In this document: positions 9,288-53,076 of the stretch, piece by piece
Position numbering within the stretch: the first letter of the stretch is position 1
How the letters are laid out: the number at the start of each line of letters is the position of its first letter
Assembly (NCBI GenBank): GCA_965649825.1
Contig: OZ287707.1
Location: 302,292-366,291, forward strand
Reading direction: 5' to 3'
Length of the DNA stretch: 64,000 bases
Source: Penicillus capitatus
Taxonomy: Eukaryota; Plantae; Chlorophyta
Position numbers and translations under genes: made by a program
The notes under the pieces: generated by a model
What the model was told of the DNA's origin: nothing
Database searches by the model: none
The model's input: the letters and a program-made list of their open reading frames with translations, nothing else

Positions 9288-10026
9288 TCACATACTAGCC
9301 ATGTATACAGGCATGTCGACGATCATATTCAACTCCGCGTTCGCAAACACGCGTTCAAAGACTTCGTAACGGAGACCATCCTTGACATCTGCTTCCGTCA
9401 AGATCTTGTGAACGAGTGTGTCCATGTCTTCATCTGAGAGACAAGTGCCGCAGAGCTGCCGCAGGACGATCTGCAAATCGTCCCCCGATACGATTCCTAG
9501 AGAAGGTAAGTGAACATCGGTTGAGCATAAGAGTGAGCGATTGGACCGTCGCCGTCCACATCGAACAGCCGAAAGATGGACAAGGTTTTGACTTCGTGCG
9601 ATGCTTTGGAGGAGAAAGGCGTCAGCAATCGACAGAACTCCATGAAATTCACACCATCAAACACCCGAACCTGCACGTCTGTTCCTCTCCTGTCCGAGGA
9701 GAGCGGTCCTCACACGATACGTTGTGCCAAAGGGTTGATGGAAAGCTCAGGGATGTTCATGAATTCGTCTGCCGTGATGTATCCCTTTCTGCCTCGATCC
9801 AAAGTGCGAAAGCGACGGTAGAGGGCACTGATTTCGTCGTGTGAATCTGCACACAGTCATCGACGGTAGTTGCCGTCGCTGTCGAAGCTAGGCAGATTAC
9901 AGACGCCGCCACAATAGGCGCGGACTTCTTCGACGTCGTTTTGCGTCAGTCCATAGCTCATGACCTGATATACGTGATCCGCCGTGGCCGCGTTCGAGCG
10001 GTGGTGGAGAGACGCACTTGGCCCAT
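9288..10026 (-). CDS. Calcineurin B-like EF-hand protein
   Basis: MGQ|VMSYGLTQNDVEEVRAYC...ALYRRFRTLDRGRK...ITADEFMNIPELSINPLAQR...IFRLFDVDGD...LRQLCGTCLSDEDMDTLVHKIL; EF-hand motifs and an N-terminal MG. Confidence 0.88.
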
Positions 10027-12388: not shown

Positions 12389-14755
12389 TTAGAGGATGTT
12401 CTGTTCTGTAATGAAACGTCGCACAGCTGTGGTGACGTCTTCTTTCTTCGTGAGCAAGGCAGCATCCAAAAACTGATGTGCTCTCAACGATGTTACGCGA
12501 TGTCTCTGAGCCACACGCAGCGCTGCAGACACACGCTGAGAAGGGAACCCGAGTGCGCACAGAGATGACCTTTGATCACTTTGCCATGTCGCAGAAGAGT
12601 GGTGCAGTACTGATCCATGGCATTCGATTCGTTCCATTTTGCATCGCGCACGGCACAACGGCCGAAAGCATCGAGTCCAAGTTCAAGATATATCCCGTGA
12701 GGGCTCACTCTCTCCAAGTGCTGAGCCACCTCGACGGTCTGTGCATCTTTGCATCCATTCAACAGCTGCTGTAACTGAACAGCCATACGGTCCGTCTGTC
12801 ATCCATGCCGTTCGACAGAATGCCCTGACCTGAAAGAACTTCTTCTGTCGGATGAGAACGTCTGTCCACACAACGTAGGCAGAAGGATCGAGGGAGAGCT
12901 TCTTGCGATCGACGCTTCGCATAAACTCCATGAGACACATCTCCAGATGATCCGGCTCGACGACGTCTTCGCTGAGGAGGAACTTAAAAACGTCTGCAAT
13001 GACTTCTTTGGATTTGAGCATGGGCGTCTGCAGCTTCAGTGCGGCTGGAGTGATCTTGTCAGCGTTGGGTGGATAGACGGTCTCAGAGCCGTCGTAGTGT
13101 AACATACTGAACACTTCACGCATCACATGGACGCTGTGGTGTTGACGGATGACAGAACGGAGAGTAGAGACCAGTAGATGACGTGGATGGGCTGTGGGTA
13201 TCCATGCCACACGACGACGGTTGAGGAATCCAATCAACGGAGCCGGTTCGGAATATGATGTGACCACTCCTTCCAGATCCAACTGAAGGGTCACATCAAA
13301 AGAGTGAGAGATGTACTGGAAGATGGACAGACTTGGAAGCGATAGATGTTGCCGTTGTCGTCGATAACGACATCCGGTTGAAAGAATCGCCAATCGCCGT
13401 TGAAAGATTTAATGTTTTGGAGTTTGGCTGGTGACGAAGGTGTGGCCTCGGATGGCACAGAAGATTCGCCTGAAGTACTGGGTCCATCTGTCACACGAAA
13501 CATCTCACCTGTTCACACACATCCTGGATCGGATAGACAGTGACTTGGAAGAAGGTACCGGAGACAGGAAGGGGACTGCCGATGGGCAGAGAACTCGGCG
13601 ATGCGAGATCGTATATGGCAACAACGGAGGAATTCGTGTGTTGCACCAACAGGACGTTGTCAACGGTGTTGAAATACAAAACATCGTTGCACATATCGTA
13701 CTCCCTCGCCAACATCATCGTATCCCTGCAACAGCCGTTCCACGAAGATCTGCACGGATTGGATGTCTTCTCACATAAAAATGAGATAGAATCTGAGACG
13801 ACTGTTTCTTCGATCGATGTGACAGAAGAACACGCGATTGTATAACCTGGAGCGCGACATCTCAGTTGATGCAGATGGATGGCTGATGACCTGAGGAGGA
13901 CAATGTCTCGGGAGCTGACGAAAACGGGTGGCGGTCGAGGACTCGCGTTCATGCTCATCACTGCATCGAGATCTTGACTCGCAGAAGATGGAAATGGGGC
14001 CAGTTCTGTGACTGGGAGTTTGATCATCTGTTTAATGGTGAACTGATATCCCGTCACTCTACTGCCGCTTTGGCCCGTTCCCATGAGTAAGACCCGTGTT
14101 GCATATGTATAGATATACCACCTACAACAATACATATTCAACGATCTACATGATGTGACAGGTCACACTTGATGGTATGCCGAATGCGTTCTGTCATCTT
14201 TAGACCCTCTCGTTTTTCGGACGTGAAATTGTAGAACTCAATGGCGGAATCCGTCACCATGATCAAATCATAATCCACAGATTCCACAAAGAAACATCCC
14301 AAGATGTCTCTCTTGCGATTTGAGCATCCCTAAACAGACATCACTCTTTCACAACTATCCTTTTGAAGACACAATAGAGTGACCTGGACAAAGAGATTCC
14401 CTGTGGCTCTGTCAACAAACTGAATGAGTTTGTTGGAACGGTGGATGGCTAGTGTCTTGCAATCGAGAGAGATCTGCACCGAGATGTACTGGTCGACACT
14501 GTCCACATGGACCTCCCAAGTCTTGCGATTGAGATGCGGATCAAATCCATCTTCTATATCACAAGAGTGACCCCCGACAGAAAAGAGTGACATAGAAAGC
14601 TGACCGGTTGGAAGGTCATAAGCTTCGATTCGGTCACGTCGAGGGACAAGAATGAGACGTGTCGCGTCGTCGAAGAAAAGTCGCTGCTCGGAATGGAAGC
14701 CGTCGATGTGTCCTTGACTGCACATACGCACACAGGCGACGGACGAGCTCGTCAT
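12389..14755 (-). CDS. RMC1: Regulator of MON1-CCZ1 complex (C18orf8/Mic1-like)
   Basis: N-terminal LFFDDATRLILVPR, beta-propeller-like middle, C-terminal Mic1 domain CLMEFMRSV...ALRVAQRH...AHQFLDAA...RRFITEQN*. Confidence 0.8.
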
Positions 14756-14820: not shown

Positions 14821-16877
<2,057 letters not shown>

Positions 16878-16895
16878 CAATTGTGCTCAATGCCA

Positions 16896-17773
16896 TCATG
16901 AATGCGATTGGAGATATTGAACGAGGGCATCAATAGTGATGATTTTTAGACCGTATTGACGGGCAAATTTAAAGAGCTGCGGTGTGCGAGCCATCGACCC
17001 GTCTAATCGATTGACGATCTCACACAGTACTCCTGCAGGACGACATCCGGCCAGCCGCGCCAAATCCACACTCGCTTCTGTATGGCCACGTCTTGTCAAC
17101 ACACCTCCATCCGAATACCTGTCGCATCATCATCGCATGACGGATAGCACAGCGAGGGCGTTGCCTGAGAGGGAAGATGTGACCGGGGCGTCTAAAATCG
17201 GATGCTTGACTGGTGGCATCTGCCAAGGCATTGAGCGTTTTGGCCCGATCCCCTGCCGATATCCCCGTCGTCGTGCCCTTTCGCAGATCGACCGTGACTG
17301 TAAAGGCCGTGCATTTGGCGTCGGTATTCTGCGAAGGCGGCACCATGAGTGGCAACTGTAGTCGATCCAGATCTTCTCCCTTCATTCCGACGCACACGAC
17401 GCCGCTCGTATTCTCCACCATGAACGCAATGCTCTCCGTTGTCACCAAATCTGCTGCGGCAACGAGATCTCCTTCGTTCTCTCGACTTTCGTCATCCAAC
17501 ACCACGACAAAGCGTCCGGCGGCGATTTCTTCGATGGCGGATTCGATGGTGTCAAAACGCAATTCGCTTGACCGTGGGCTCTCCAGTATGGACCCATGAC
17601 TTAATGCCTTATCGGAAATGAGCATAGGGGAGGCATGATCCAAACCGACCTCTGCTGTAAGAGAACCCAAAGGAGACCTCCCGTTTGGCGACACCGATGC
17701 CGTTTCCCGATCACACGTCAGCTCACTGGCATTCGGTGATGTGACGTGTGCCTTGGCTACTCTTGTTGCCCAT
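16896..17773 (-). CDS. ribB: 3,4-dihydroxy-2-butanone-4-phosphate synthase (stand-alone RibB domain)
   Basis: [70 protein letters not shown]; stop follows directly after the domain. Start codon approximate. Confidence 0.92.
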
Positions 17774-18323
17774 GCTTTCCTGACCTTCAGTTAAGATCTT
17801 GCGAGTTAAGGCACTGCAAAGCATGTGTACGTACAGAGCTTCGTGTTGAGGGTCGTGGACACGAGACATGCACACGTCCCACAAAGATGCCGTTTGTGCT
17901 CGTCATGACTGATACGCCGTGTGTTGGTATGTGCGTCTACAACAAAGCCTCGCTCGACGACAACCACACGGTCAACACTCAAACCAAGAATTCGCTTCGG
18001 AAATAAAGAATGAAGATTTCAAACGTCGAACGGCGATGCGCACCGAATATCGTATGGCGTCCGTCACAAAGAAATGATGAGAGTGTACGGCATCGCCATC
18101 GACGGACGGGTTCGATCACTCACCGCTCGACATCGATTGTCTGCGGGGCAGAACCCGTTCGATGCTGCGTTTGAGTAATAGAACAACAAAGAGTAACGAA
18201 AAGAGTGAGAAAAGAAAGCCGAAGCAACAGACGAGTAGGCCGATGTTGAGGACGGACGGTAAATGCTCGCTGTCTTCGCTTCGATAGCGCATCCAGCTCT
18301 CGTGCGGAACCTGTCGTAGTGAT

Positions 18324-18745
18324 CGCTTCCGTCTGAAAAGGCCACGTCGTTTCATATTCCTTCGTCGTTTCGCGATACCTACCGGCTGAAACACAGCGGA
18401 CAGGGACGTGCGCAGCGCATGGGCGTCTGGGGTGGGGATATGGCGTCGAGCATGGATGACGTCGTAGGCGCCGCTTCGAAGAGAGAGTTATGACGTATGC
18501 GATAGGTCAGATGCATTGGCAACGGTCCGAAAAGCCGCATTCAAAGTCTGTCGTACAAGGCATATGCGTCGCTCTTTGTTGTGCCGTCGGGGGGTTTCTC
18601 GCGGACCTCTACTTCTGCGAAGGAGACGACGCATTGTGTGTCGTCATGTGGTGATGCACCGAAGAGAGGGACTGTCATCGCGGTCTTATCGTTCGGGAGA
18701 CGGTCGACCGAAGACGACTGTCGAAAAGGTGTTCAGCAGCACATC
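18324..18745 (+). repeat. Duplicated fragment of the upstream region and 5' CDS of the gene at 33286 (matches ~33066-33468)
   Basis: Direct sequence match from CGCTTCCGTCTGAAAAGGCCACGTCG to CAGCAC(A/G)TCGACTGTGA. Confidence 0.9.
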
Positions 18746-19385
18746 GACTGTGAAAACTGCGAGTGTTGTTGCATACCCAAACGTTAGTAAACGAGCTCAT
18801 TATTAGAAGCTACGGCTTAACACGACACCGATATTTGGACGCACGCACGTTGAGAAAGAAGCTATGCGAAACATAGCAACCTCCATTACTGTCTCGTTGT
18901 CGATGAACGAACACACACATCAACGAAAAACCTTAAAACAGAATGGTGACCTAAACAACGCAATTATTCCCCTTTCATAGTGTTAGAGGCTCTGATGTGA
19001 CATGTAGTAGGTTTTGATGTGGCTGTTTGTTCCCTTATACAGTCGGGCATGCCTTCATTACGTTCATTTTGTCTGACGCTTACTCACTATCGATTTGGTT
19101 TATACAGGATCGCCACCGTCTTGACAGAGAACATGCCAGGTACACTCGACAAAGCCCAATCTGCGCGCAAGACTGCTTCAATGGTCACCTATCTTCTTGA
19201 CCTCTTCCGAGAAGCCTTTGATCAACTCCCCGTATCGCGGTCGACCTTCTGCTTCGCATCGTCTGGTTTCTTGAAACTCACCATCTGTTCTTCTCGAGCC
19301 CGCGTGCTCCGAAGATTATATCGGCGATTAACCTCTCGCACTCTTGTTAGTTCATCTTCGTAAGACCAGCTCGGCCTACAGCGGC

Positions 19386-19608
19386 GGCGTCGCTCAACCA
19401 CAGACTGGGAAACACGGCGAGGCAGAGGAGCTCTACACCAAGAGCCTCACTCTTCGGGAGAAGTACCTGGGCCATCGCAACACCGAAGTCGCTTCCAGTC
19501 TGATCAGTCTGGCGGCCGTCAAGGTCCTGCTGAGTCACTACGAGGATGCGCGAGGCCTCTACAGTCGAGCCCTGACGATGTTAAAAGACATCATCGGCGA
19601 AGATCACC
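19386..19608 (+). pseudogene. Isolated TPR-exon fragment copied from the NB-ARC-TPR gene (26741-26964)
   Basis: Near-identical DNA encoding HGEAEELYTKSLTLREKYLGHRNTEVASSLISLAAVKVLLSHYEDARGLY; a 1-nt deletion near its start. Confidence 0.9.
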
Positions 19609-19799
19609 GATCTGCGAGTCCTTTTAAACCCTGTTGTATAGAGAGACTGATTATAACAAACGTCCACATGGACGATTAATCTCACTCTTCTTGCCTGTAA
19701 TGCATCGACGCGGGGCGTCTCACAGACCACGACATTTCTAAATAAATGTATTACATTACGTTACATTAAGATGTGCAGAACAAGCATGACATGACAACA

Positions 19800-20329
19800 A
19801 ACAAACGGTTGTAATGCGTGACAGATTACAACCGTTTTTTGTCGTCAGTACATCGACGGTTGTCGGAAACGTACAACCGCAACACATGTACACCACGCGC
19901 TGTACATCGGCGCAATACTGTCGCGGAAGTGCGACGGATAAGTGGAGCGCCGCGACATGACAGTATTGCGCGTCGCGTACATCGGCACAATACCATCGTG
20001 GCATCGCGCCAGAACGCGCAGATACCATTATGGCTAGTATTTTGGGTTTTGTTTGTTTGTTTTCTTTGTTAAAAAGAAAACAAACCAAAAAGATCCTTTA
20101 TACACTGATACCATGCAACCAGTAACAATGACACAAGCAAGAGCACAGCTGGGGGCGGCCAACTTCGACTGGGGGATGATCGGGCCGGTGCTGGCCAGGA
20201 TGGTGGAACACGTGGGGAGGATTAACGGGGATGTTCGCAGGCATGGTTTGGGGATTCCGCCGGTGAATGGAAGGGGTCAATTAAGACTCGGGGTTTACAT
20301 GTCAGTTTGCGATTTTTATGCGATCGGCA
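19800..20329 (+). other. Hairpin-palindrome-ORF cassette copy 1 (ORF 20113-20328, truncated)
   Basis: Hairpin units (GTACATCGGCGCAATACTGTCGCG), palindrome CAT(20026)...ATG(20113), ORF MQPVTMTQARAQLGAANFDWGMIGPV...DFYAIG, then an abrupt switch to a copy of the NB-ARC-TPR 3' flank. Confidence 0.85.
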
Positions 20330-20762
20330 CCCCACCCTGCGCTTTGTCAGCCAGCTCGCTGTGTGATCTAGGTCCTACGTCACACATTCACACTGGATGA
20401 TGATCTGTTTTAAACGACACACTTGCTGCCCGAGCAGTACGATGCTGTCCAAAAGATGATCATTAAAAACTAATAATTGTCAAAATTTTGTGTGACAAAA
20501 TTATATCCATTTGTAAAATAATTCATCAATTGTAAAAATAGATTTCGGTCGAGAGCAGTACACTTCCGTCACGACGCGTCCGACGCGACAGTACTGCACC
20601 GTCACGTACATCGGCGCAATACTGTCGCAGCACAGCGCGTCGTGACGGAATATGCGCGTCGCGTCGCACTGCTGCGACAATACTGCATCTAGCCAATACA
20701 CAACTACAGTGGTATTGGCGCGTTCTGATACGCTGCTGCGGTGACAGTACCACCGCGGCAGC
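20329..20762 (+). repeat. Copy of the NB-ARC-TPR 3' flank plus hairpin array (matches ~27793-28280)
   Basis: Shared CTAGGTCCTACGTCACACATTCACACTGGA and AGCAGTACGATGCTGTCCA, and the same hairpin units through CCGCGGCAGCGCG. Confidence 0.9.
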
Positions 20763-20798
20763 GCGCGTTTTCGCAACTTAATCAACCAAACCACGACG

Positions 20799-21415
20799 TT
20801 ACACATTTGGATCGAATAAGTCATACAACGAATCCACAAAGTGTATTGCCGAGGATCGTCCGAAGGCCCGAATGTCCCCTCGCCTTCTCACTGTCGTACA
20901 CAAGAGGTGAAATTCCCGCACATATTTATCCCTCTGGACCGCATTTCCTTGCCGCATAACCCCATGGTGAATTAACCGCCTACGTGTACGGTTCATTATG
21001 ACACGCCACGTAACCACCCCCGCGCGGTTGCCGACCGACAAAAAAATCCCGAACCGAAAGATACACCCAATTCCTCAATTCATCCCTTCCACGCACCGGC
21101 GCGATCGCCGATCCACGTCTGCGAACCGCCCCGTTAAGCCATCCCGTGTACACCACCATCTTCTCTACCACCGGCTTGATCAGCCCCCAGTCGAAGTGTG
21201 TCGCCCCAAGGTGTGCTCTTGCTTGTGCAAGTGTTACTGGCTCCATTGCAACGGTCTATAACAGATCTTTTTTGTTTGCTTGCTTTTTTACAAAGAAAAC
21301 AAACATAAAGAAGCTTTAATATACCGTCACGATGGTATTTGCACGTTCTGGCGCGCTTTCACGATGGTATTGCGACGCAGTACGTTACGGCGCAATACTG
21401 TCGTCGTCGCGAGCG
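20799..21415 (-). other. Hairpin-palindrome-ORF cassette copy 2 (ORF 21246-20799, one-base frameshift in a T7 run at ~21040-21046)
   Basis: MEPVTLAQARAHLGATHFDWGLIKPVV...; removing one T restores DFLSVGNRAGVVTWRVIMNR...FVDSLYDL; palindrome 21244-21334; hairpin unit 21365-21402. Confidence 0.85.
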
Positions 21416-21429
21416 GTTCGACTCTGAGT

Positions 21430-22713
21430 GTTATTAACGTTGTTATACGATTCGCGACAATTCCCCATCATGCGGATCTCGTGTGCAACATCGAGGAGAG
21501 CAATGAGAAGATCCGAATCGTAGTTCCAGCTTTCAAGGAGAGTAGTGTTCGTCGCCGGATCTACCAGCTTCATTGTCGCCACTTCATGGACATCTTTACA
21601 TGACCCTTGTATTCCTAGCATCTTTATTTCTTGGATGGTGCTGCATCTCAAAGCCTTTTGCTCCTCTCAATGCTTTTTTCTCTTTGCACTTCCATTACTA
21701 TCTCTTATGTATCAATGAAAGTTTTTATTTTTGTTGCTAATTTGAGAACAAGAAGCTTTGCTGCGATCAAGGTTCGGAGCACTTCGTACCATTGCTTCTC
21801 TAATACTCCAAAATCAGCGATGGCATCTCGGCATTTCGTATATGCGTTTTCTAACGCCATGGGATTGATATCAACGCGTTCCGCGTCTCTATGAAGATGC
21901 AAGATATGTACTCCGCCGTAAAGTGTGGACAGGACGTGTCTTCCTGAACGTGCGATGCTTGACGGAGCATCTTTAGTTTCCAGGCGTTCAGCAGCCTGCT
22001 GTATGAGCTCGAAATAAAACCGGACTGGGTAATGCTGTACAGGTGACTTCATTTCTGCTTTCTCCTGCACTACGCCCCACCGAAGTTGTTCCTTTTTATC
22101 CTCGAACAATCTGTACCGGCCAATGACATGCAAAAGAAAGAAGAGCTGGTGGATTGCGAGGAAGCCTGCTTCATACTGGGAAAAGTTCTGTTTAGTGAGT
22201 CAGCGCTTGGAAGATAGAGCTGACCTAAGGTTCGTGGCTAGATCTATTAATCGGACAGGGTCTTCATAAACGGAAGATTCATCCCCTGTGAGTGAACTGA
22301 AAAGAACCTTCGCAATGTTCTCGTGGAGTAACTCTCCTCTGCATTCGCGCAAACGGCAATGAATGGCACCAACAAAATCCGTAAGTAGAGCTTACCTTGG
22401 TCACGGCAAGGAACTATTTTTGCCAGCTCTGCATACCCGAGAACCGTTTCCGATATCGAACATTCCTTATTTCGCGTGTCATACTGACGCAGCCGTGGGA
22501 GGAGAACATCTCGTTCAGACTCGTCCGTCGTGGCGTTGTAGCATCGACCAGCGACTTGGCACACTATTCCGTTCCTTAGAAACGACACTCAGGAGCTTCG
22601 GGTCATTCAGTTCTTTGTCGTCCGAGTTGGGCGGGGGAATGGCGACTGAGAACTTCACATTCGGACGGTTCTCCTATGGACGATTCTTCGTCCACAACAT
22701 GAACCTGCATCAT
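21430..22713 (-). pseudogene. Pseudogene of the Arm-NACHT gene (N-terminal exon only)
   Basis: Three ORF pieces in different frames match the 528-aa exon (YNATTDESERDVLLPRLRQY; QHYPVRFYFELIQQAAERLETKDAPS; ESWNYDSDLLIALLDVAHEI); no NACHT domain follows. Confidence 0.9.
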
Positions 22714-23814
22714 CGTGCGTGACCTGCGTAACGTGGAATCGTCTCTTGTCGTTACAACGAACGAGAGATTCACTCACCGGTTCACAAAGCTCACGGAAGA
22801 GAAGACGAGTCGATCAACTCGTTAGCATTAAATGTAAGTGTCGGTCGTTGATGTGATGCATCCTGCCAGGAGAATGCTCATTCAGGTTAATGCTTTCTCG
22901 ATAACGAAAGAGACTGTCTCGCGCTGAGCACCCTGCTCTCTGGAGTGACTCTTAGACCAGATTTGTGCCGACATCGCAGACACAAACGAACATCTAGTAC
23001 ACGGATGAGGTCACTGGGTTGAGATTATGAACGCAAATGACCACAGACCGTATTCCCTGATATCTTCCATTACAGACTTGACTGGACCGATACGAGAGAA
23101 AGCCGTAAATGTAGCGTGTTCGAAAACCAATTGGACTTGGAGATGTGCTTCGGCGAGAAGAGAAACCCCTTAAGGACGGGTGAGAGATGATCAAGGATCA
23201 GCTCATCAGGAGTCATCTAGCATGTCGTCATACACACATCGGTAAAACCATTGGAGGAAGTGCTAGTATCGCCGTCGAACGCACGTCAAGTTCATCTTGG
23301 CAATGCCTTATTGTATTCAGAACATGAAGGATCTCCGCGTTTCCGAGGCTTGGCGGCATCGGACTGACAAAGCATAAGACGTTGCAGCATCCGCGGAAGA
23401 AGCGTCTCACTTGGCGGAACAAACATCATTCGATCTTTGTGCCAAGAAAACCGCACGTTCTTTATCAAGAGTCAAAGAGAAAGATTCTGTCAACACCTTA
23501 TCGCGTTCCGTCAGCTTTTGTTCTAATGATTGTCCCATAGCTCTGACACGTTTCCCTGGGCATTATCGATGGCTATCAGATCATCTCGATACGCAACAAC
23601 TCTTCTTGCTTTACTTCCAACTGAAGCTCGAGAGACACGACAGTGACGGGATAAGAAACCTCTAAACAGTTAAAGGTCCGTGACCATCGAGGTTCAAGAT
23701 TTCCCTCACCGAGATCATACATCTTAGAACACTGGCGCCGAGGTTTAGTAACTGTGCCATCATCTTCTTTGCCGCTGCCTAGAAGGCGTTTCACGACGGT
23801 CCTTTAAAAACTGC

Positions 23815-26800
23815 ATGGGGGATATATACCGCAGCAGAATGCCTTCGACGAAATCACCTTCCCCATCTGAGTACCATATGTTAATTTCGGCGTTCACCGT
23901 TCCGCTTGTCGCGGGGAGTCGAATGCGAAGGCACCTTCGTCGTTCGTGGCAGGTTTGGTCGTCGGCGTCGGCGTCGTACAACGCGTCCATCGCTTCGCTC
24001 ACTGCACGTGCATTTCCTCCTGCATCCACGTGCATCGTTTCCATCGTTCTCTTTCGCCGCTTTCCACAAATGCATTCTCCTGTTCGCGTATCCTTTGGCC
24101 TACGCAGCTACGCCACAGACTCGGAGAGTGGTTCATGGCCAGGTTCCGACCTCTCCAGCTTGCCCTCCGTCAGCGACGATGACTCACTCTGCGGAGAGTT
24201 TCACTGCGAGTCCGACTTGACGGGCTTCGACGGAGGATCTATCGATTCAGCCACAACACCCAAAACAAACGACCGTCGTTCCTCAGCGCCACATAAAGAC
24301 GGAGGTGCCCATTCAACCCTCCAAAGAAAGCTGGAGCGAAATAGACGAGCGCGCTCGTCGCCAAGAACAGGCGAGACCCCATGCGAAGGTGGCGGGCGAA
24401 CCGACAGCACGACATCAAATACGTCACAGCAAAAATACCAACCATCACCGCAGCAGAATGAAATGACCCCAGGTAAGGGCATTGCCTTGACCAACCGACA
24501 GCTCCATGAAGCGTGCCATCCAAAAGGACGCCCAGCAACGCCGACAAGAGTGAGAACTGGAGATCAAAGCCTTCTCCTGAACGACGCCAGGACAGAAGAC
24601 GCTCTGATAAGAGGTTGGAGCTAACTCATGTTCCGTGAAGGTGACGAGAAGTGTGATGTAGACGCCCGAGAATGGATCCGCCCCTCAAAGGAGCAGTGGT
24701 ACATCCCTTACCATCGTGTCCCATCACCATATTGCACCGCCCAACGGGCGATCCGTGACGAATCCGGCGTTCCGACAGACGGTGCAGAAATGGTGGGACG
24801 AGAAGAGGAAGTGGGCACGATCTCTTCCTTGATCGAATCCGGTCGACATGTTGTCATGATCACCGGCCTTCCTGGTATTGGAAAGACAACGGTCGCTGCA
24901 ACCGTCGCAGATGAGTTGCTCAGGAGCCAGATTCTGCAGAACATTCGCTATCTCAATCTCTCCAACGTGACCGAGCTCTCCGACGCTGTCTTCAGAATCG
25001 GAGCAGCTCTGAAACATCCGATCTACCAGAGTGCCCTGAGCAGCGGTAAATCTGTCCTTCTCCGTCTCATCCCTTACTCATTTCTGCAGGCGGATGGCAG
25101 AGGATCGATTGAAAAACTGGTTAAAACGACACGGAAATACCCATGCGCCGACGGGTTGGGTTCTGGATGGACTGGATCATCTGTTCTTGGATTCCCATGA
25201 ACGGCAAGGGCTGTTCGATATTCTGATGGAGATTTTGGAATTCTTTCCCCGGTTGCACATCATCATGGTCTGTTCGGAGGCTCCGAATCCTTCAGAAATG
25301 CCCTTCGTCGACGAAGTGATTCGGATCGGCCCTTTGCCGGAACAGGCTGCCTATCAATTCGCAGAGAGCCTTCTGGGCGGCGCGCTTTCGAAAGGGGAAG
25401 CTCGCCACTTAGTATCCGCCACGGCAGGATTCCCACTCGGCATCAAGATCGGCGGAAGCAGTATCTTGGCCGGCGGCTGCTCCGCCTCTCACTTGGAACA
25501 GCGTCTGGATCAGGTGAGGGACGGGGATAGCGTCGAAATGCGAGCTCCTTGGAATCGGGCACACGATATGATTCGAGAAGGCATCTCAGCTTTGTCGCCA
25601 GAAGATCGACGTGGACTCATTCTCCTCTGTCAATGTCCTGATGCCTTTACTGTGGAACATGCAGCAGCTGTACTGGGTCAGTTACGCAAACCGACACAGA
25701 CCTGGTCATTGCTGAGACGGCTAATGATGAGAGGCTTCGTTCGATACATGCTCACCGAAGGCAACCTCCCTGCGTCCACTGCACTGTCTTCTGACGCGTG
25801 TCTTTCTCTGCAGGGACCTATCGGTTAGAGGAGGCCGTTCTGGATGTGCTGACACATTGCACGGCCATTCGAGATCGTGTCTCGAGAGAAGGCGAGTACG
25901 AGGCCGTGTCGAGAAATCTGGAGATCGATGAAGATCAGAGGGATGGAGCACGGGCGGGATTGGTGGTCTACTATCTTCGATTGCTGGATCGAGCGCTGAT
26001 GGTCTTCCGTTCGGGTTCCCGTCTCTCAACATACCGTCTGCTCGAACAGGAGCGCGACGGTCTCGAACGGTTCGTTCGGTACATAACGGAACCATCTGTC
26101 CGGCGAAAACTGCTGTCGACGGGATCCAAAGGAAAACTGCTGAAGCTGCTCAAGATCCTGAGCGATTTCGTCGTGGATGTGGGAAAGCACTACTTCACCT
26201 GGAACCAGGTACGCAACATCTGTGCTTCCATCGGATGGCTGTGGGAAGAAGACATGACGCCGATCTACGACGAGGTGTCCTACAAGGTCCGCTTGGCGCT
26301 GGCCAATGCCTTGGCCTGCATCGGAGAGCGACGAGACGCCGAGATCATTCTGACCCAACTGGAGACGTACATCGACGGCCTGAACACGTGTACGGAGCGA
26401 GATCTCAAGGCGAAGGCGGATGTCCTGGTCCTCAAAGCCAAGATTCAGCATCTCGCTGGTCGCTACCCCGAAGCCGAGCGCTACTTTAATCAGGCGCTGA
26501 ATGCCCAGGAGAGTGCTTACGGGCGCGATCACTTCACCGTTAGTCGTACGTACTCACTTCTGGCCACGGTCCAGCAGGTAGATACTGCTGACTCGTGGGC
26601 GAGATCGATGCGTTGTGTTTGTCTGTGCAGATTCTGCAGAAATTCGGCGACGCAGAGCATTCGTATAAATGCAGTTTGAAGATCCGAATGAAACACACCG
26701 GCAAGAACGTCGTCGAAGTGCCAACGGTCATGCATAACTGGGCGTCGCTCAACCACAGACTAGGAAAACACAGCGAGGCAGAGGAGCTCTACAACAAGAG

Positions 26801-27787
26801 TCTCATTCTTCGGGAGAGATACCTGGGCCATCGCAACACCGAAGTCGCATCCAGTCTGATCAGTCTGGCCGCTGTCAAGGTCCTGCTGAGTCACTACGAG
26901 GATGCACGAGGCCTTTACAGTCGAGCCCTGACGATGTTAAAAGACATCATCGGCGAAGATCACCAGGCCGTGGCCTACACATCGACAAGACTGGGGGTGT
27001 TGCTAGAGACGCAGAAATGCTATGACGAAGCGATCCAGCACTTCGCAGAGGCACTGGTCATCGACGATCGAGTGTACGGAGAGAGACACGAACAGGTTCA
27101 GAGGTCTATCGGCAGAATCCAGAGGGCGGCGCTGAAGCACGCGCAGACACTGCACACGTCTAAGCAACTCGTTCGATGGAAGGCGTACATCGAAGAGCTT
27201 CTGAAGAAGTACCGTTTCAAGTGGCCGGAACGGACGGGTCCGGACAGCAGGACCGGATTTGCTGTCGATACGTCTGCAGATCTGTTGGCGGCTCAGCAGT
27301 CCATCCAGTGGCCATTGATCCGGAGGCTTCTGGTCCGTCTGAAATCAAGACGGAGACAACGACGTCGTTCCAGGGATTCGCACCGGCAGTCAAGGACCAC
27401 ACAGGCGTCGATTTGGACAGCACGCTCCATCTGAATAGCTCGGCCTTGCAACTGAATGTGGACTCGGCTAGCAGAGGTCCACCTGGATTGCCCAGAACGG
27501 CAGGTGCGTATTCTGCCGATCCCCCGTCCCAAGAAGCTTCGGGTATGAAGAGATACTCTTCGACCGACATCCCCAAGGCGTCGTCTTCGATCATGGGATC
27601 ATCTCAGAACAGCGAGCTGAATTTCGGTCAGTACTCGAGTCAGCCGGAGGGGAATCAGACCATCGCTCACGCCTATTCACTCGTGCACGATAACTCTCAG
27701 TTCGGCGTGGCCAACACTAGCTCTCTGGAGACGACCATCTCTCCCAGAGCCAATCAAGACATCACCTATCCGATCCCTGCCTCGTAA
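23815..27787 (+). CDS. NLR-like NB-ARC (AP-ATPase)-TPR protein with disordered N- and C-termini (start uncertain)
   Basis: Walker A ITGLPGIGKTT (24865-24888), Walker B WVLDGLD, GxP motif AGFPLGIK, winged-helix region, kinesin-light-chain-type TPRs (AERYFNQAL...YGRDHFTVSRTY; AEELYNKSL...HRNTEVASSL). Inferred introns 24473-24640, 25046-25100, 25761-25813 (GC-AG), 26578-26630, 27221-27279. Confidence 0.85.
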
Positions 27788-27989
27788 GACGTCCCACCCC
27801 GCGCCCTGTCTGCCAGCTCATTGTCTGGTCTAGGTCCTACGTCACATTCACACTGGAGGACGATCTGTTAGAAACGACACACTTGATGCCAGAGCAGTAC
27901 GATGCTGTCCAGAGCATGCATAATTCAAAATTAATAATTGTCAGACAATTGTGTGACAACAAACCATTTGTAACATTTTCTGCTAAAAA

Positions 27990-28299
27990 TAGATTTCCAG
28001 TACACTTCCGTCACGACGCGACCGACGCGACAGTACTGCGCCGTCACGTACATCGGCGCAATACTGTCGCGTCGGACGAGCTGCGGATCCGTCGCGCTGC
28101 CGCGACAGTATTGCGCCGTCACGTACATCGGCGCAATACCGGCGCGGCAGCGCATCGTGACGGAATAGGCGCGTCGCGTCGCACTGCTGCGACAGTACTG
28201 CCACTAGCCAATACACAACTACAGTGGTATTGGCGCGTTCTGATACGCTGCTGCGGTGACAGTACTACCGCGGCAGCGCGGCAGAACGCGCCAATACCA
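27990..28299. repeat. Array of GC-rich inverted repeats (hairpins)
   Basis: 28022-28075: 22-bp stem, one mismatch, loop TCACGTACAT. 28094-28153: same unit nested in GCGCTGCCGCG/CGCGGCAGCGC. 28225-28299: perfect 18-bp stem TGGTATTGGCGCGTTCTG/CAGAACGCGCCAATACCA with an inner stem. Confidence 0.93.
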
Positions 28300-28388
28300 T
28301 CGTACCAGTGTATAAAAGATCTTTTTTGTTTGTTTTCCTCGTTAAAAAGAAAACAAACGAAGAAGATACTTTCTACACCAATACAATG
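28298..28388. promoter_or_regulatory. 91-bp AT-rich imperfect palindrome bounded by outward-facing ATGs, containing TATAAAA (putative bidirectional promoter)
   Basis: Left arm CATCGTACCAGTGTATAAAAGATCTTTTTTGTTTGTTTTC mirrors right arm GAAAACAAACGAAGAAGATACTTTCTACACCAATACAATG; length conserved at 90-91 bp in all three copies. Promoter role is inference. Confidence 0.6.
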
Positions 28389-28820
28389 CAGCCAGTAACT
28401 CTGACAGAAGCAAGAGCACAGCTGGGGGCGGCCAACTTCGACTGGGGGCTGATCGGGCCGGTAGTGAACAAGATGGTGGAATACACTGTGCAGCTGAACA
28501 CGTGGGCTGAACATTGTGGTCCGCAAATTCCGCCGATTCTGGGGAGGGAGCAGCTGAGGGAAGCAGTGGGTTTCGTGATTGGCGACTTTGTTGCGATCGG
28601 CAACCACGCTGGGTTTGTTACGTGGCGTGCTGTAATGAACCGTGTACGTGGGCGGTTAATTTTTCATGGAGTTATGCAGCAAGGGAATGCGGGCCAGAGG
28701 AATAGACTTCTGTGGGCATTTTACCTTTTATTTAGGACGGTGAGAACGCAAGGGGACATTGGGACCTTAGGAGTAACCGCGGCAGTAACGTTTGTGGATG
28801 CGTTGTATGGATTGGATTAG
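28386..28820 (+). CDS. Uncharacterised intronless 144-aa protein (cassette copy 3, intact)
   Basis: MQPVTLTEARAQLGAANFDWGLIGPVV...FVDALYGLD*; two diverged paralogs in the window keep the amino-acid pattern, which supports coding status. Confidence 0.8.
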   Translation: MQPVTLTEARAQLGAANFDWGLIGPVVNKMVEYTVQLNTWAEHCGPQIPPILGREQLREAVGFVIGDFVAIGNHAGFVTWRAVMNRVRGRLIFHGVMQQGNAGQRNRLLWAFYLLFRTVRTQGDIGTLGVTAAVTFVDALYGLD

Positions 28821-29149
28821 CTCCAATTGTGTAAGGTCGCGGTTTGGTTGTTCAAGTTGCGAGAAACGCGCGCTATCGCGTCAACAAGAAAACGCCCACC
28901 GCGCCGACGCTGAACGCGCACGGACTGCTTCCTCGGAGTTAAATAACGTAACGCTTGGTGTGACGTGCTGTCATAGAGAGAGCCGCTCGCAGTGAGAAGC
29001 AGGTTTTCGTGTGGACAAGATACACAAATGCTTTCGACGAGAACCTGCACGTCCAGCGCCGTGATGTTGAACTAAAGAATATGCGTCCCGCATACCCACT
29101 TATCAAGCAATCGGAGAAACGAGATGGGAAACCTGGTCATAAATTCTTC

Positions 29150-30500
29150 TGCAAAGCTCACCAATCCATCCGGCAGAGTGGCTTCTGTTGAATGTCCATG
29201 ACGAACAGGAACTTCTTTCGGCCATCCAACTCACAAAGTCCACCAGTCAGAGCCAGGATGATAAAACGGATGCAAATCTGAATATGGCGTACTTCCCTTA
29301 TGAACGAGACGGGCGAAAGGCAAATTCACTTTCTCATCGATTCGTGGCAACCGTTGTTCTGATATTCCACATTTGCAGAAGGGAGCTTTGGATGACATCA
29401 TTGTAATTGTGGTCCGTAGCTGTCGCGGCTTAGCAGCTCCGCCGTGTAGAGGCGCCGAAACGCGCAAGACGACAAACGCGTATCGTTACAGAGACTGTTT
29501 TTGACATCCACGGAAAGGAGTTTGTGCGGCGGAGAACGGACACACACGTCACGTCTTCGCCTCTCATGGTGTCACGCTCTCGCGTGAACGTTGCACCATC
29601 TGCTTCGTTCTGTCTTTCAAGAGGCGCTTGGACAAGCTTTGTGTCTTCTCAAGGGCGTCTTTCTCTGGTTCTGAGTGCCGAATGGCTCACTTGGCCTGTG
29701 AAGTCGTGTCACATCAGCACTGTAGAAGGGGGAATGTTTGCTTTATCTGCGATCTCGGTTTTAGGGTCTTTCTGCGTATGCGTTCGTTTGTTCACCGACA
29801 GCGCGACAATACCGGAGTCGTTAACCGGCCAGGTTGAGGGGCAAACGTAAGCAGACGACCTAGCGATTTGGAAGGAGTAAAATGCAGGGGGCAAAGACAC
29901 AGTGGACGTCCAAGTGACCCTCGAGAAAGTGCGAAGCCTTGGCCGTCAGCTTGGAGATGCCATTCGGCTCAGTCAAGACGAAAACGATCTTCATCTCCCG
30001 CCTTCTATAGCAAACCGGCCCGCAGCTCCGACTCCGCAACACGAGGCTGATGGCAGCGCGGTCGACTACTCCATTTCGGCATCCAAATCGATCGACGTCT
30101 CCTCCGGCGCGAACACGTGCACTTGATTCGGGCGCCGACACTCCACCGACTCGTGCAGATGAAGATGATTGCGTCCACATACAAAAGCCGGTGCTAAGAC
30201 GGCTGGTCAGGGCGGCTGTTCTCCCAATCCTAACGTATGCGATTGAAGCACGGGGCTTTCGACTCTGAGAGTCAAGTCTGTCCACTTGACGCTCGACCGG
30301 ATCAGCCGACTGTGCTCTCAGTTGCAGATTAGACGCACGAACCGCCATGGGCAACCACCGCGACTGTTGCGCGACTCGATTACCATCCAGGCGCCTCCGA
30401 ACCATGGAGAGCGACGGACGAAGGAAGGCCCTCGTCGCAACTGCCTCGTAACAGCAGGGATACGATTGCCAAGTGCATAGACAAGTGCGCAGCTGTTGGA
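29150..30500 (+). mobile_element. Decayed non-LTR retrotransposon (LINE) reverse transcriptase
   Basis: RT-like motifs in the expected order: ELLSAIQLTK (~29210), IRGNRCSD (~29340), VFDIHGKEF (~29497), ISVLGSF (~29750), *ADDLAIW (YADD with TAC>TAA at 29848), LVRAAVLPILTYAIE (~30205-30250). Confidence 0.62.
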
Positions 30501-30943
30501 GGCTAAGGTTAGGAATCCTTGACCATCAGGGGTATTTAGAGAGGACCTCCACCCTTTGATCAATCTCGTATCCCTGGTGCCGACATTCGAGTGCGTTTTA
30601 GCGTCGTCGTTCGCGCGTCTTTCGACTCCGAGTTCTTCAAAGTGATCACACGATCCCGGCACAGACACTCTCTGAATACTAGGCACGCTCCCATCCTCCC
30701 TGTTCACAGAAGTGCTGCATCTTGCAAACTTAGGAACATCCGAACAAGACGAAGAACTTTTTCTAAGGTCGGCACTCTTCCTCCTGGTTGGTAGATAGAC
30801 AAAGCGTCTCGGCACCGGATAGCAACAACGCTTCGAATCCGGCCGGCGTCAGCCATCGCTCATCAACTGCTTGCAGATTCGGTAGCGACGCCATCGGGCG
30901 TGACGGTGACAGGCGGACAGCATTACAAACTGTCATCCACGGT

Positions 30944-31943
30944 ATGGCCTTCTGGGTCGTGCGCCGTCTACAAACCCGGCTACTGAGTCGTAACAAGAAA
31001 CCCATTCTCTGTCTTGTCCTCCTTTATCCGATCCTCTACCGATACAGTTGCCGGACACTTCGTTAGGATGCAGTGTTAGAGTGTTTCGTTTCAAGATCTG
31101 TGGATCAATAATGAATCTGTTTGACTGCAGGCCACGAGAACAGCGACTTTGTTCTCCGTGTCAGGAAAAAGAACGATGTTAGGTTGTCAGGCTATGCGAT
31201 GTTTGTTGCAATCTTTATGCTCATAGATTGTGATGGTGGCGGATGGTCAAGTGACAGTGGACAATCAAATTCAGAGGCCGAATGTGCACAAACTCAGCCG
31301 TGTTAGCACCGAAGTCATTGCTGGATGCATCTCGGATCCAGCCGGGAGATGCGGGATTCGCTATTCTCTTCTTAGGTTCAACGGCAGATGCTTTCTCCCT
31401 CCTTGAAATCAGAAGACATAAAGATAGACGGGTATCCAGGTAAGGATCGTCGAAGCCCTTAAAGCATCCAAGGAATGCAGATCGGATTGTAAGGGCGGCA
31501 GTTGAATTGGCCAAACTCTGGAGAACAGACAAGATCTTGCGAAGGCTTGATGTACGAATGGGTGTGGTGTCTTCCTTTGTCATCGAAACTATGTTCTAGG
31601 CTGCCATGATTGTTGCTGGTGCAGATACCGCGCCGGAGATCACCGGCCGAGGCGACGTCTTAGAACCGCACGATCGAATTCTAGGTGCGTTTTGTGTGCG
31701 ACTGTCGATGTTATCTCTTGACAAATATATCCTTCTCTAGCAATCGGTTCTGGGAGTGGCTTTGCCGTCGGTGCTGCACGTGCCCTCATCGACCTCCCTA
31801 ACTCGGCATCATAACAAATAGGTGCATTCGATGGTAGACGATATGCTTTCTTTAGCTTTGTGCCTGTGTTGCTGCATTCAGCGGAGAAAGCAATGAAGAT
31901 CGCAGCGGATGCTGACATCTACACGAATCACAATTTCATGTGA
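30944..31943 (+). pseudogene. hslV: HslV (ClpQ) protease pseudogene with mitochondrial-type presequence
   Basis: VMVADGQVT, GSTADAF, RAAVELAKLWRTDKILRRLD, ITGRGDVLEPHD, AIGSG, AEKAMKIAAD-IYTNHNF. Defects: N-terminal TT replaced (HENSDFVLRVRK), lost splice donor, +1 frameshift (~31410), in-frame TAA at 31812. Confidence 0.85.
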
Positions 31944-32099
31944 GGAACATTGGACATTGGGCAAATCAAGAAAGACGAAGAGAAGAAAGAGAGGCAACTC
32001 GAAGAGGAATTCAAATCATCGCTTCTCAAATCGACCTCATGGTTGACAGATTACATGCCCAATCGAGGACATGTCTGTTACTCTTAATCCAACAGGAGT

Positions 32100-33000
32100 C
32101 CGTTCATGGTGTTATGCTCTTACGTCCTAATAACGTCCGAATAACCTTGAATGAACAAAACGCTCGCGAAATTCTAACAGCGGAAGACAAGATCTTTAAA
32201 GCAGAATCTCAGATGCGGTTCGATTGTTCTCATCTTTTTAATCGAGATGATGTCCGAAATGTTTCAAATCTCAAATACATGTATGTGTCCCGTAGACTGA
32301 ATGGGACACTCTCCTATCTAACGACACATGGATCAATGAATCAGCCTACAACTCTCCGATGAAGGTTTCGTGGCGATGTTAACTAATCGTTCCGAGTCTT
32401 TCTTTCATCTCTTCAGCGTCGAGAAATCCGTCGCCTTCCTTCCTGGCAGTTCTTCCTGGCCATTTATAGTTCCTCGGCGTCTGCAATGCGTTGTCGTGCA
32501 GTTTCTGTCGTCTTCAACAGCTGCAACGGCAATCGGAGAGGCACGATTTGAAGCAGTTGTCCTGAAATGCCACGAGAAAGAGCGACAGCCTGTGAGGACG
32601 GATCTCCGTTGTCGTTGCGTTCAACCCCAGCCTCGGTACAGATTTCATGTGCAGATCACTCAAATGCCACGACACCTCCACACCACCATCACACGAATGA
32701 GAAACCTCCTCATCCTTTACAGCAGGACCATACCAAGACACCTTCCTCTCCAATAGAAAACAGAAAATGGCCATCGCCGGAGAATCGAAGAGAGGATGCT
32801 GCAGAGGCATGCCAGTGAAGGTTGATCGGAATGCGTTCTGTGATGATCGACCCCTCGGAGTGCATCATGTTTGGATCTGCAGGATTTTCCCTGAAGTGCA
32901 TCCCACAGCCAGTTGCTCATCCATTGGATCCACACAGACACACTTCACAATGCATCTCATTCTTTGCCCTGCCACGGTAGCATGGTACGTGCACATGTTC
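32100..33000 (-). pseudogene. WDR75/Utp17-like WD40 pseudogene fragment
   Basis: CVCVDPMDEQLAVGCTSGKIL, LHWHASAASSLRFSGDGHFLFSIGEEGVLVW, VPRLG...FQDN, interrupted by stops and frame changes. Confidence 0.6.
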
Positions 33001-33285
33001 TAGGAAGGTCAGATGCCGACAGCCGCTTTGATCGGGAACGGATATTAGCGTGGCGTCATCCGTTCGCTTCCGTCTGAAAAGGCCACGTCGTGTCGCAACA
33101 TCAACCGGCTGGAACACAGCGGACAGGGACGTGCGCAGCACATTGGCGTCTGGGGTGGGGATATGGCGTCGAGCATGGATGACGTCGTAGGCGCCGCTTC
33201 GAAGAGAGAGTTATGACGTATGCGATAGGTCAGATGCATTGGCAACGGTCCGAAAAGCCGCGTCAAATTCTGTCGTACAACGTAT

Positions 33286-34107
33286 ATGCGTCGCTCTTTG
33301 TTGTGCCGTCGGGGCATTTCTCGAGGACCTCTGCGATGGAGACGACGCATTGTGTGTCGTCCTGTGGTGATGCACGGAGGAGAGGGACTGTCATCGCGGT
33401 CTTATCGTTCGGGAGACGGTCGACCGAAGACGACTGTCGAAGAGGTGTTCAGCAGCACGTCGACTGTGACGCCGCGTTCCGTCTCGGCGCCGTGGGAATT
33501 CGGTTGGCAGATGAATGAGCGTCATATTCAGTGGGTCGATACATTGAAGATCAAATTGATCAAGCGATTTGCGGCGGAAGAGCTTGGCATTGGAGATACC
33601 GAATGTGAGGAGCGATTGCAAATGCTCAGCGATGTGGTACCAGGAATTGACGCCAGAATGCAGAAAATGCCGCCGACGCTCATTGCGGAGTTGTTACGTC
33701 ACACACACTCATTGGCCAATACCCTTGTCGAACTCAAAGGCATCTTTCCGCAGGTCCATATCGCTATCTTACTCAGCATAGGAGATCGATGTGTATCTCA
33801 GACGGATGTCGGTTCCTTGTTGATGTCGTGCCCTTCGCTGGCAGGCAAGGACACTCTGGACGACGTTTCTGCAGCGGCTGCGGAATTGCGCCGCCTGTTG
33901 CCGCATTCCAATGTCGATTTCTTAGTAGAAAGATATCCGATGCTCTTAGACGTCGATCAGCTGAAAGAATCGATGAAGCTTCTGGAGAATCTCATGCCGG
34001 GCAGCAACTTCGAAGAGGTTCTGCAGAAGAACCCGCAGATGGTTTTCAGTCTACAGAAGGGACGCAACATGATCCCCTACGACGAAGTACCAACATCTGC
34101 CCCATGA
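33286..34107 (+). CDS. Conserved hypothetical, probably plastid-targeted helical-repeat protein
   Basis: R/S-rich N-terminus; PWEFGWQMNER; repeated mTERF-like helices (LMSCPSL, VERYPMLL, LQKNPQMV); one probable short in-frame intron. Confidence 0.7.
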   Translation: MRRSLLCRRGISRGPLRWRRRIVCRPVVMHGGEGLSSRSYRSGDGRPKTTVEEVFSSTSTVTPRSVSAPWEFGWQMNERHIQWVDTLKIKLIKRFAAEELGIGDTECEERLQMLSDVVPGIDARMQKMPPTLIAELLRHTHSLANTLVELKGIFPQVHIAILLSIGDRCVSQTDVGSLLMSCPSLAGKDTLDDVSAAAAELRRLLPHSNVDFLVERYPMLLDVDQLKESMKLLENLMPGSNFEEVLQKNPQMVFSLQKGRNMIPYDEVPTSAP

Positions 34108-52712: not shown

Positions 52713-52784
52713 GCCCTCGTGGTGTAATGGTTGGCACACTTGAGGTTTTCTCAAGAGGCTTGGGTTCGAGTCCCGCCGAGGCGC
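52713..52784 (+). tRNA. Pseudo-tRNA forming the SINE head (nominal anticodon TTT; not a functional tRNA-Lys)
   Basis: 72-nt cloverleaf with D-stem GTGT/GCAC and anticodon stem CTTGA/TCAAG; loop GGTTTTC lacks U33 and purine-37; acceptor and T stems mismatched. Confidence 0.6.
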
Positions 52785-53076
52785 CCCGTGAGTCACTCGG
52801 GTGATAGTGACTGGCCGGAGGGTGAAGCGGCGACTCATCATGATCAAGAAAATCGGAAGATTGTGCAATTAAAAGACGTGGGTCAAGTCCAGACCGGAGC
52901 ATGCGGTTGGACGTGAGGTGGACGACGAATCGTCGCAGACGCTGTGAGACATGTGAAGCGACGGATGGAAGCACGAGTCATCTAACTGAACGATTGAACG
53001 ATGAATTGACAATGGGCGTCGGGTTGCTAATATGCTAATTAAGCGTATGCAGCTGTAAAAATCCAAATCGAATCGA
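52713..53076 (+). mobile_element. tRNA-derived SINE (~365 bp) with target-site duplication
   Basis: tRNA-like head with intact A box (TGGTGTAATGG) and B box (GGTTCGAGTCC); 3' tail AATCC-AAATCG-AATCG; flanking direct repeat ATGACAACGTTCTTGC at 52699-52714 and 53077-53092. Confidence 0.82.

Follow-up and report, generated by a model that had tools for sequence, protein, structure and literature searches.

A small orphan gene family with palindrome-rich upstream regions in an NLR-rich island of a plausibly green algal genome

A 64,000-nucleotide stretch of contig OZ287707.1, recorded under Penicillus capitatus (positions 302,292 to 366,291; hereafter the window), contains three diverged copies of a cassette in which a small open reading frame (ORF) of 144 codons is preceded by an array of hairpins and palindromes. 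Ten copies of this ORF were found, their reading frame is protected and their sequences are mosaics of one another; several breakpoints are positioned within palindromes, and no homologue was returned from the databases searched. With somewhat better than even confidence, we regard the cassette as a multigene family restricted to this lineage, which owes its spread and its reshuffling to segmental duplication, inversion and gene conversion, all driven by palindromes, and which is not obligately tied to the NOD-like receptor (NLR) genes next to which some of its copies are located. The cassette would then consist of a small gene and a compact upstream region belonging to it, and the family of ten would grow and shrink locally, being reshuffled by segmental duplication, inversion and conversion between copies, without transposition. 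The agents of instability would be the cassette's own palindromes, i.e., the hairpin array, a cruciform, an AT-rich palindrome and a quasi-palindrome within the ORF. The NLR neighbourhood would go back to an ancestral site 3′ of a gene encoding a signal transduction ATPase with numerous domains and tetratricopeptide repeats (STAND-TPR), together with co-duplication in an NLR-rich island.

The ten copies and their protein

All ten copies are located at positions 682-890 kb (~210 kb) of ctg340467 (ENA ERZ25074695; 894,450 bp, 45x coverage, metagenome contig), of which the window represents positions 765546-829545, reversed; the copies found are local rather than scattered. The three copies within the window, for which the initial annotation had reported a common architecture, were confirmed at 20113(+), 21246(-) and 28386(+) and are designated A9, B8 and C7, while the seven outside it were recovered by sequence and profile searches followed by tblastn. 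Intact ORFs are present in three copies (C7, P0002, which is copy Lp6, and P0004). A frameshift is found in five, including L2, which has also lost its 5′ half, and two are truncated. Only C7 (28386-28820, plus strand; protein P0001) is an intact 144-codon ORF in the window: A9 (20113-20331, plus strand) comprises codons 1-73 only, and B8 (20754-21246, minus strand, including its 3′ tail; ORF 21246-20817) is shifted by +1 within a T7 run at the hot spot described below (A7 at 21040-21046 of the plus strand), with its halves in different frames. The tblastn identity of A9 and B8 to C7 is 54-58%.

The ORF is, or recently was, a real gene, because its reading frame is protected. In a frame-corrected alignment of seven full-length copies, each departing from the consensus at 61-144 of 432 sites, a single stop codon was present, compared to 22 ± 4.4 expected when the observed substitutions are placed randomly, and none of 5000 simulations yielded one or fewer (P<2e-4). 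The remaining frames hold 2-15 stops per copy. Codon position 2 varies least, and pairwise ratios of nonsynonymous to synonymous substitution rates (dN/dS) range from 0.3 to 0.9 and are not near 1 overall, being lower in deep comparisons and reaching ~1 where recent pairs are compared over their C-terminal halves. It is very improbable that the ORF is not a gene and that the repeat represents non-coding satellite-like DNA or a structured RNA locus. Most ORF pieces were called as fragments only, many copies are broken and the upstream DNA has strong secondary structure, as might be expected of such a locus; against this stand the stop count, the constancy of codon position 2 and the closed alternative frames, as well as the hairpins, which lack compensatory change (0/16 predicted pairs), and Rfam, whose families were unmatched in the window and in the loci compared with it. 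A structured RNA or small-RNA precursor was rejected, since an Rfam match, covariation and a target of the hairpin arm elsewhere in the window were all missing.

The encoded protein is basic (isoelectric point, pI, 9-10.8), and neither a transmembrane segment nor a signal peptide is predicted in it. A first AlphaFold run was poor (predicted local distance difference test, pLDDT, 49); with 11 alignment rows, one good six-helix model was obtained (pLDDT 83.5, predicted template modelling score, pTM, 0.80), the other four having a pLDDT of 42-65, and a soluble six-helix fold is provisionally proposed. In the good model a small beta-bridge links FDWG with VTW, the two aromatic motifs of highest conservation, which would place both halves of the ORF in one domain. 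The N-terminal motif PVT..ARA.LGA..FDWG.I.PV described in the initial annotation is a real feature of the family alignment, and its characterization of the protein as intronless, helical and unrecognised agrees with the model and with the library searches described below. Judging by pI and charge, the protein might conceivably bind nucleic acid, possibly its own palindromic upstream repeats.

Sequence and profile searches of 5.8 billion clustered proteins, as well as an exhaustive HMMER search of 1.84 billion representative proteins, returned the proteins of this contig alone. The protein had no match in Pfam (even at E ≤ 10), PHROGs, PADLOC, NCBIfam or the PDB sequence profile, a known transposon accessory protein was not among the matches, and protein-guided scans of IMG/VR and of the JGI metagenomes found no related loci. 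A Foldseek search with the predicted model against PDB and BFVD gave a best E of 0.47 with a template modelling (TM) score of ~0.3, and its globin-like top matches were discarded (TM ~0.3, root-mean-square deviation >10 Å). Discarded as chance matches were also 127 loci containing the conserved upstream box, retrieved by DNA scans, for which tblastn and blastn similarity was nil. An identity as an HUH/Y1 (IS200-like) protein was rejected, as the conserved His-hydrophobic-His motif is missing and the protein is all-helical.

Palindromes, breakpoints and mosaic copies

Upstream of the C7 ORF, on the plus strand, a leader (27771-28005) is followed by a T-shaped double hairpin (28006-28165), a long cruciform (28211-28313; 47-nt arms, 81% complementary) and an AT-rich imperfect palindrome (28298-28388). 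The outer stem of the T-shaped structure (28006-28020/28151-28165) encloses two hairpins (28019-28078 and 28094-28153) with 25-nt arms that are 92% complementary, and the right arm of the cruciform holds a conserved box, CAGAACGCGCcaATACCA (28282-28299; mirrored at 28225-28242), which is the best-conserved non-coding element and is found in cassettes only. The AT-rich palindrome extends from a CAT through to the ATG of the ORF, with 40-nt arms (28298-28337 and 28349-28388) that are 78% complementary. Its core, TTGTTTTC-N11-GAAAACAA, is kept in eight of the nine copies having an ATG and occurs in the window at the three copies only; compensatory changes in the palindrome were not found among the copies, and the frame behind the mirrored minus-strand ATG has a mere 11 codons, this ATG being therefore a by-product of symmetry. 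The region 27990-28390 folds at -140.5 kcal/mol, compared to -71.1 ± 4.6 for shuffled sequences (z = -15), and the corresponding z values upstream of A9 and B8 are -6.1 and -2.8. An 18-nt hairpin arm was found eight times in the window (0.06 expected), each time adjoining a copy; the box CAGAACGCGCAGATACCA, the hairpin arm and the AT-rich palindrome are all confined to the vicinity of ORF copies. The hairpin arrays and the ATG-to-ATG palindrome that had previously been pointed out are both real. The 18-22-nt box at about -95 and the AT-rich palindrome at -55 to -25 may together act as a promoter.

Within the ORF, the imperfect 13-nt palindrome TTGC-GATC-GGCAA (28591-28603, plus strand; codons 69-73) is a hot spot of +/-1 indels and breakpoints. 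A net +1 or -1 change is present at this site in five of the eight copies spanning it, corresponding to at least three independent events, while elsewhere in the ORF alignment only one frame-breaking indel was observed; of four independent indels, three fall within the same 24-nt window, and a rough estimate that allows for the post-hoc choice of window gives P ~0.01 for this clustering. A9 is cut at the quasi-palindrome, and L2, which bears the perfect palindrome TTCCAATTGGAA at this site, starts there, next to a hairpin array. Further breakpoints are found upstream. The segment A′ (20331-20765, plus strand), an orphan leader and hairpin segment matching 27793-28280 at 82-93%, is joined to the cut end of A9 and meets B8 at the equivalent of 28275-28280, in the cruciform; next to copy c1, a junction corresponds to 28203 and is likewise assigned to the cruciform; and the inverted arms of locus L001 (one of the stretches compared with the window, like L002 and L004) terminate within the AT-rich palindrome.

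Imperfect palindromes are frameshift hot spots via template switching, and we infer that the frameshifts at the hot spot arose in this way. Programmed ribosomal frameshifting was rejected as the main explanation, since shifts in both directions, +1 and -1, occur and a slippery site is missing there from most copies. Assembly error is possible for the T7/T5 runs (B8, c2) and unlikely overall, because nearby ORFs of 800-890 codons are intact.

The limits of shared homology differ in every pair of copies, lying between -160 and -615 at the 5′ side and between +495 and +1423 at the 3′ side, and the ORFs themselves are mosaics. According to sliding-window identity, the P0004 ORF is 94-100% like A9 over nt 1-96 and then up to 98% like B8, while the L2 ORF first resembles c3 and from there on C7 (98-100%). 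At contig 689-693 kb there is a paralogue of the STAND-TPR gene that precedes C7; over 3.6 kb, including the 65 nt that follow the stop codon, the two are 95.8% identical, compared to 76.7% for the cassettes behind them, and the switch takes place at 27852. Likewise, C7 and Lp6 have 3′ flanks of 92.5% identity, as against 76% for their ORFs, and at L001 two 550-nt inverted arms, 96% identical and each also carrying a hairpin array, flank two convergent ORFs that share 37% of residues. With flanks that are often more alike than the cassettes, limits that vary and ORFs that are mosaic, the copies carry the signature of segmental duplication with repeated gene conversion between paralogues, and the flanks are younger than the cassette.

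Three modules are co-duplicated. An ASL-fragment/DHBP-synthase block (window 16174-18591) is 97.5% identical to the contig's end (L002 10805-14405), where it lies directly 3′ of a cassette copy, and its tail (18323-18753) is repeated within the window at 33064-33469 (89%). The second module is a NACHT/STAND-TPR head-to-head block (80%), described in the next section. Several repeated pieces accompany the cassettes. The C7 leader matches L001 13007-12866 (91.6%) and window 20331-20628 (82%). The core cassette ends with a 3′ tail that is conserved in the copy alignment (28821-28885, plus strand), and behind some copies an extended 3′ repeat is present (28831-29808, plus strand; 92.5% identical to L001 10598-11584), which was also detected in L002 (92% up to 29317) and, at lower identity, at copy c3 (up to 29426). 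The third co-duplicated module (30473-30999, plus strand) adjoins cassettes elsewhere, namely copy c1 (92%) and a piece beside P0004. The upstream region of A9 (19790-20112, plus strand) contains hairpins, the box (20010-20027) and the AT-rich palindrome (20049-20115), and that of B8 (21243-21411, minus strand) the palindrome, the box (21333-21350) and one hairpin.

Three local observations concern these comparisons. Codons 33-64 (ORF nt 97-192, window 28482-28577) constitute a hypervariable block with two forms, "..NTW..CGP.." and "..NGDVRRHG..", which share 40-56% nucleotide identity between copies that are ~80-90% identical on both sides. Between the 96% NLR block and the 77% cassette, ~160-200 nt (window 27853-28013 vs L004 16923-17130) are without detectable similarity. 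Finally, ARAGORN placed a tRNA-Thr(UGU) gene in each L001 arm, at 9432-9503(+) and 12532-12603(-), both below the Rfam tRNA gathering score.

Foldback, CACTA and hAT transposons typically have ends with direct and inverted subterminal repeats in arrays, and such arrays are present in the cassette. It also occurs in multiple copies, in both orientations and in part truncated; the L001 arms enclose two convergent ORFs, and A′ resembles an insertion into the A9 ORF. A non-autonomous mobile element, be it a foldback element, a miniature inverted-repeat transposable element (MITE) or an undescribed hairpin-dependent type, with the hairpin arrays as transposase sites and the ORF as cargo, is nevertheless an unlikely explanation. 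The homology limits vary in every copy pair, a pair of terminal inverted repeats and a target-site duplication were not found, and no transposase or other Pfam domain was detected in the cassette ORF or in the ORFs of 70-180 amino acids scanned over 28817-32756. The copies all come from a 210-kb part of a single contig, a tRNA-Thr gene and a spacer present in the L001 arms are missing from the other copies, and the flanks are common to varying extents, as in segmental duplication. The same DNA contains a true MITE with sharp ends, unlike the cassette. These findings also speak against the small mobile unit travelling with NLR loci that had been suggested as one interpretation, for which constant ends were likewise absent. 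The MITE-like insertion (~157 bp, ends TGTCGTG...CACTGACA) is located at L001 10441-10597 in the 3′ tail of Lp6; its site is empty in C7 (window 28831-28839), and a second copy, 94% identical, is present at window 52344-52507(-) near a tRNA-Lys gene.

A related genome is represented in ENA ERZ26696514, in which the Cnd3 protein is 90% identical to that of the contig studied here, and ctg303781 of that assembly (L007) is syntenic with window 35691-59916 at 84-88% nucleotide identity. Window 51123-54403, containing tRNA-Lys(UUU) at 52712-52786 and the MITE copy, is unaligned to L007. No family member was present among the called proteins of the related assembly, and the cassettes diverge by up to ~35-40% (nucleotide) versus 12-16% between the two genomes in nearby syntenic DNA; very fast evolution, loss in the relative, or a region unassembled there are possible reasons for the absence. 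The wtf and Spok genes of fungi offer a comparison for drive-like families, and we considered whether the cassette might be a selfish or conflict family of the killer/antidote type, with a turnover resulting from its own fitness effects. This is quite improbable in our estimation. An orphan protein without homologues in the databases searched, the lack of a called copy in a relative this close, rapid mosaic divergence by gene conversion, the inactivation of about half of the copies and their clustering, in part as inverted pairs, would be in line with such a family; on the other hand, a second overlapping product is not evident, the protein has no transmembrane segments and the absence from the relative rests on called proteins only.

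The NLR neighbourhood

The gene preceding C7 (24628-27787, plus strand) had been labelled NB-ARC-TPR. NB-ARC remains below the Pfam cut-off, with AAA_16/nSTAND3 as the best-scoring Pfam families, and STAND NTPase-TPR is therefore the safe name, the TPR part of the label being retained. Two short GT-AG introns, of 55 nt at 25046-25100 (GTAAAT) and 53 nt at 26578-26630 (GTAGAT), both restore the frame, and the paralogue at contig 689-693 kb has the same frame changes. The gene is probably intact, and its interpretation as a frameshifted pseudogene was rejected, as the introns fit and the frame changes are common to the paralogue. A TPR fragment (19386-19608, plus strand; 223 nt, internal), a 94% copy of 26741-26964, precedes A9. 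On the minus strand, the NACHT gene is represented by a truncated duplicate of its N-terminal ORF (21400-22713; residues 1-436 only), which is abutted by the B8 upstream region. B8 had been presented as following an Arm-NACHT pseudogene, but it abuts the point at which the N-terminal ORF is truncated (residue ~436), and no complete pseudogene precedes it; Pfam support for "Arm" is nil.

The head-to-head module mentioned above is a 3.3-kb block, duplicated at 80% between window 2760-6049 and 21460-24752, in which NACHT (-) is arranged head-to-head with STAND-TPR (+). Locus 1 holds an intact NACHT gene and a 42-residue STAND stub, and locus 2 the reverse. A 269-amino-acid ORF without Pfam hits (23815-24624) is located between the head-to-head genes.

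Four of the ten copies (A9, B8, C7 and c3) are located 150-620 bp downstream of NLR-derived sequence and are co-oriented with it, as had been stated, correctly, for all three copies in the window. The six others do not follow an NLR and are found next to WDR75, methyltransferase, UFL1, PPR and ASL genes. For C7 and c3 the arrangement is common by descent, A9 follows an internal TPR fragment, and B8 adjoins a truncation point. The leader of Lm5, 20 kb from any NLR seen, begins with a remnant of the STAND-TPR gene, its final ~17 nt and stop codon, as does the C7 leader, and the ancestral cassette was therefore probably positioned just 3′ of that gene. The adjacency is best read as this ancestral position combined with co-duplication in an NLR-rich, rearrangement-prone island.

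In the initial annotation an NLR-effector module had been proposed as the other interpretation. That the 144-amino-acid protein is an effector, guardee or decoy of the STAND-TPR/NACHT proteins, with the linkage kept by joint function, is rather unlikely, and the idea has been weakened by the present results, although part of it stands: the co-orientation of four copies behind NLR sequence and the NLR stop-codon region retained in the leader of a non-NLR copy are both consistent with it. The head-to-head NLR pair is flanked by the outward-facing B8 and C7, a cassette is present behind both STAND-TPR paralogues (cassettes 77%, NLRs 96% identical), and fast, mosaic evolution is often seen in conflict-related genes. 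What argues against partnership is, besides the six copies elsewhere and the position of B8 inside the NACHT N-terminal ORF and not after a gene, that the sole intact NACHT gene has no cassette where one had been predicted: in the 10 kb downstream of it, just outside position 1, neither an ORF copy nor hairpins were found. Copy c3, behind the second, apparently intact NLR paralogue, is broken by a frameshift, a stop and another indel. A BLASTP comparison (word size 2) of four family members with all NLR ORF segments gave a best match of 13 residues at E = 0.25, inconsistent in position, so no motif common to both was found; HeLo, HeLo-like, Goodbye, SesA, TIR and other Pfam domains had no match at E ≤ 10, and there is the lack of a predicted transmembrane segment or signal peptide.

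Several points weigh against the duplication and conversion account that we favour. Four of ten copies just downstream of an NLR exceed the ~0.3 expected, a rough figure given that the events are non-independent, and 96%-identical NLR paralogues with very different cassettes could mean that the pairing is maintained. The causal role given to the palindromes in the rearrangements is suggested only by their co-location with breakpoints. In the frameshifted copies both halves are still stop-free, so that either the frameshifts are very recent or some means of expression is needed. Finally, ~155 kb of the 894-kb contig were read as DNA and the remainder via called proteins, so degenerate copies may have been overlooked.

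Known systems, host and significance

The arrangement that comes closest to a partner module is that of the fungal NWD2/HET-S pairs of STAND and effector genes (Daskalov et al. 2012, PMC3321046), which the cassette resembles, at some of its copies, in having a small gene directly adjoining a STAND NTPase with C-terminal repeats. In the fungal system a short amyloid motif is common to the NLR N-terminus and its partner, and their pairing has been kept from species to species, whereas the cassette shows no common motif, no cell-death domain or transmembrane segment, has most of its copies away from NLRs and is missing from an intact NACHT gene. The diversity of fungal NLRs is the subject of PMC4986451 and PMC13449251.

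The family resembles more generally, in several respects, the NLR clusters of plants and fungi, where multigene families evolve by birth and death: local tandem and inverted duplicates, pseudogenes, conversion mosaics, variable flanks and an NLR-rich island are features of both. The difference is that here the diversifying family is an unrelated orphan ORF with a palindrome-rich upstream region, and not the NLR. With foldback, CACTA and hAT transposons and MITEs, the cassette shares short direct and inverted repeat arrays and, at one locus, long inverted arms; it differs in having no constant termini, and no target-site duplication, transposase or dispersed copy was found for it in the DNA and ORFs examined. 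Quasi-palindromes are reportedly hot spots of template-switch mutation, as described by Ripley in 1982 and in later work on E. coli and yeast. The clustering of +/-1 frameshifts in an imperfect 13-nt palindrome, perfected in one copy, is similar, a likeness known here from sequence alone. Parvovirus inverted terminal repeats (ITRs) form T-shaped terminal hairpins, and the T-shaped structure of the cassette has the same topology, an outer stem around two small hairpins over ~160 nt. The likeness is one of topology only: the cassette structure is internal and not terminal, Rep or capsid genes and viral hits were not found, and it does not flank a unit-length genome.

The contig is eukaryotic, with short GT-AG introns and genes for condensin, CLC, UFL1, PPR and profilin. 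Compared with its profilin, plant profilins reach E ~1e-33, as against 1e-16 to 1e-18 for Acanthamoeba and ~1e-10 for yeast, among PDB sequences whose codes we take to belong to these organisms, and because it is closest to the plant profilins a green-lineage algal host is plausible. NACHT genes are on record in green algae (PMC4773052).

It is a long shot, in our view, that the cassette is an exchangeable, fast-diversifying partner of the NLR pair, with the palindromic flanks serving as recombination signals that swap cassette "alleles" from locus to locus through gene conversion or inversion. If this were true, near-identical receptors (96%) would be coupled to very different partners (77%), and this would be a eukaryotic case of palindrome-guided cassette shuffling tied to STAND immunity in a green alga. 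To our knowledge, nothing is known of STAND receptor signalling in green algae, and an NLR-coupled, shuffled partner would be a first lead on it. The account favoured here also calls for caution, as NLR adjacency is a poor guide to function where the neighbourhood itself has been duplicated. The protein represents a new family without relatives, and its small helical fold may be new as well. If the account favoured here is correct, namely a lineage-specific family reshuffled by palindrome-driven duplication, inversion and conversion, the cassette would provide a clear natural example of short palindromes, both within a gene and next to it, steering the positions of duplications, inversions, conversion tracts and frameshifts.

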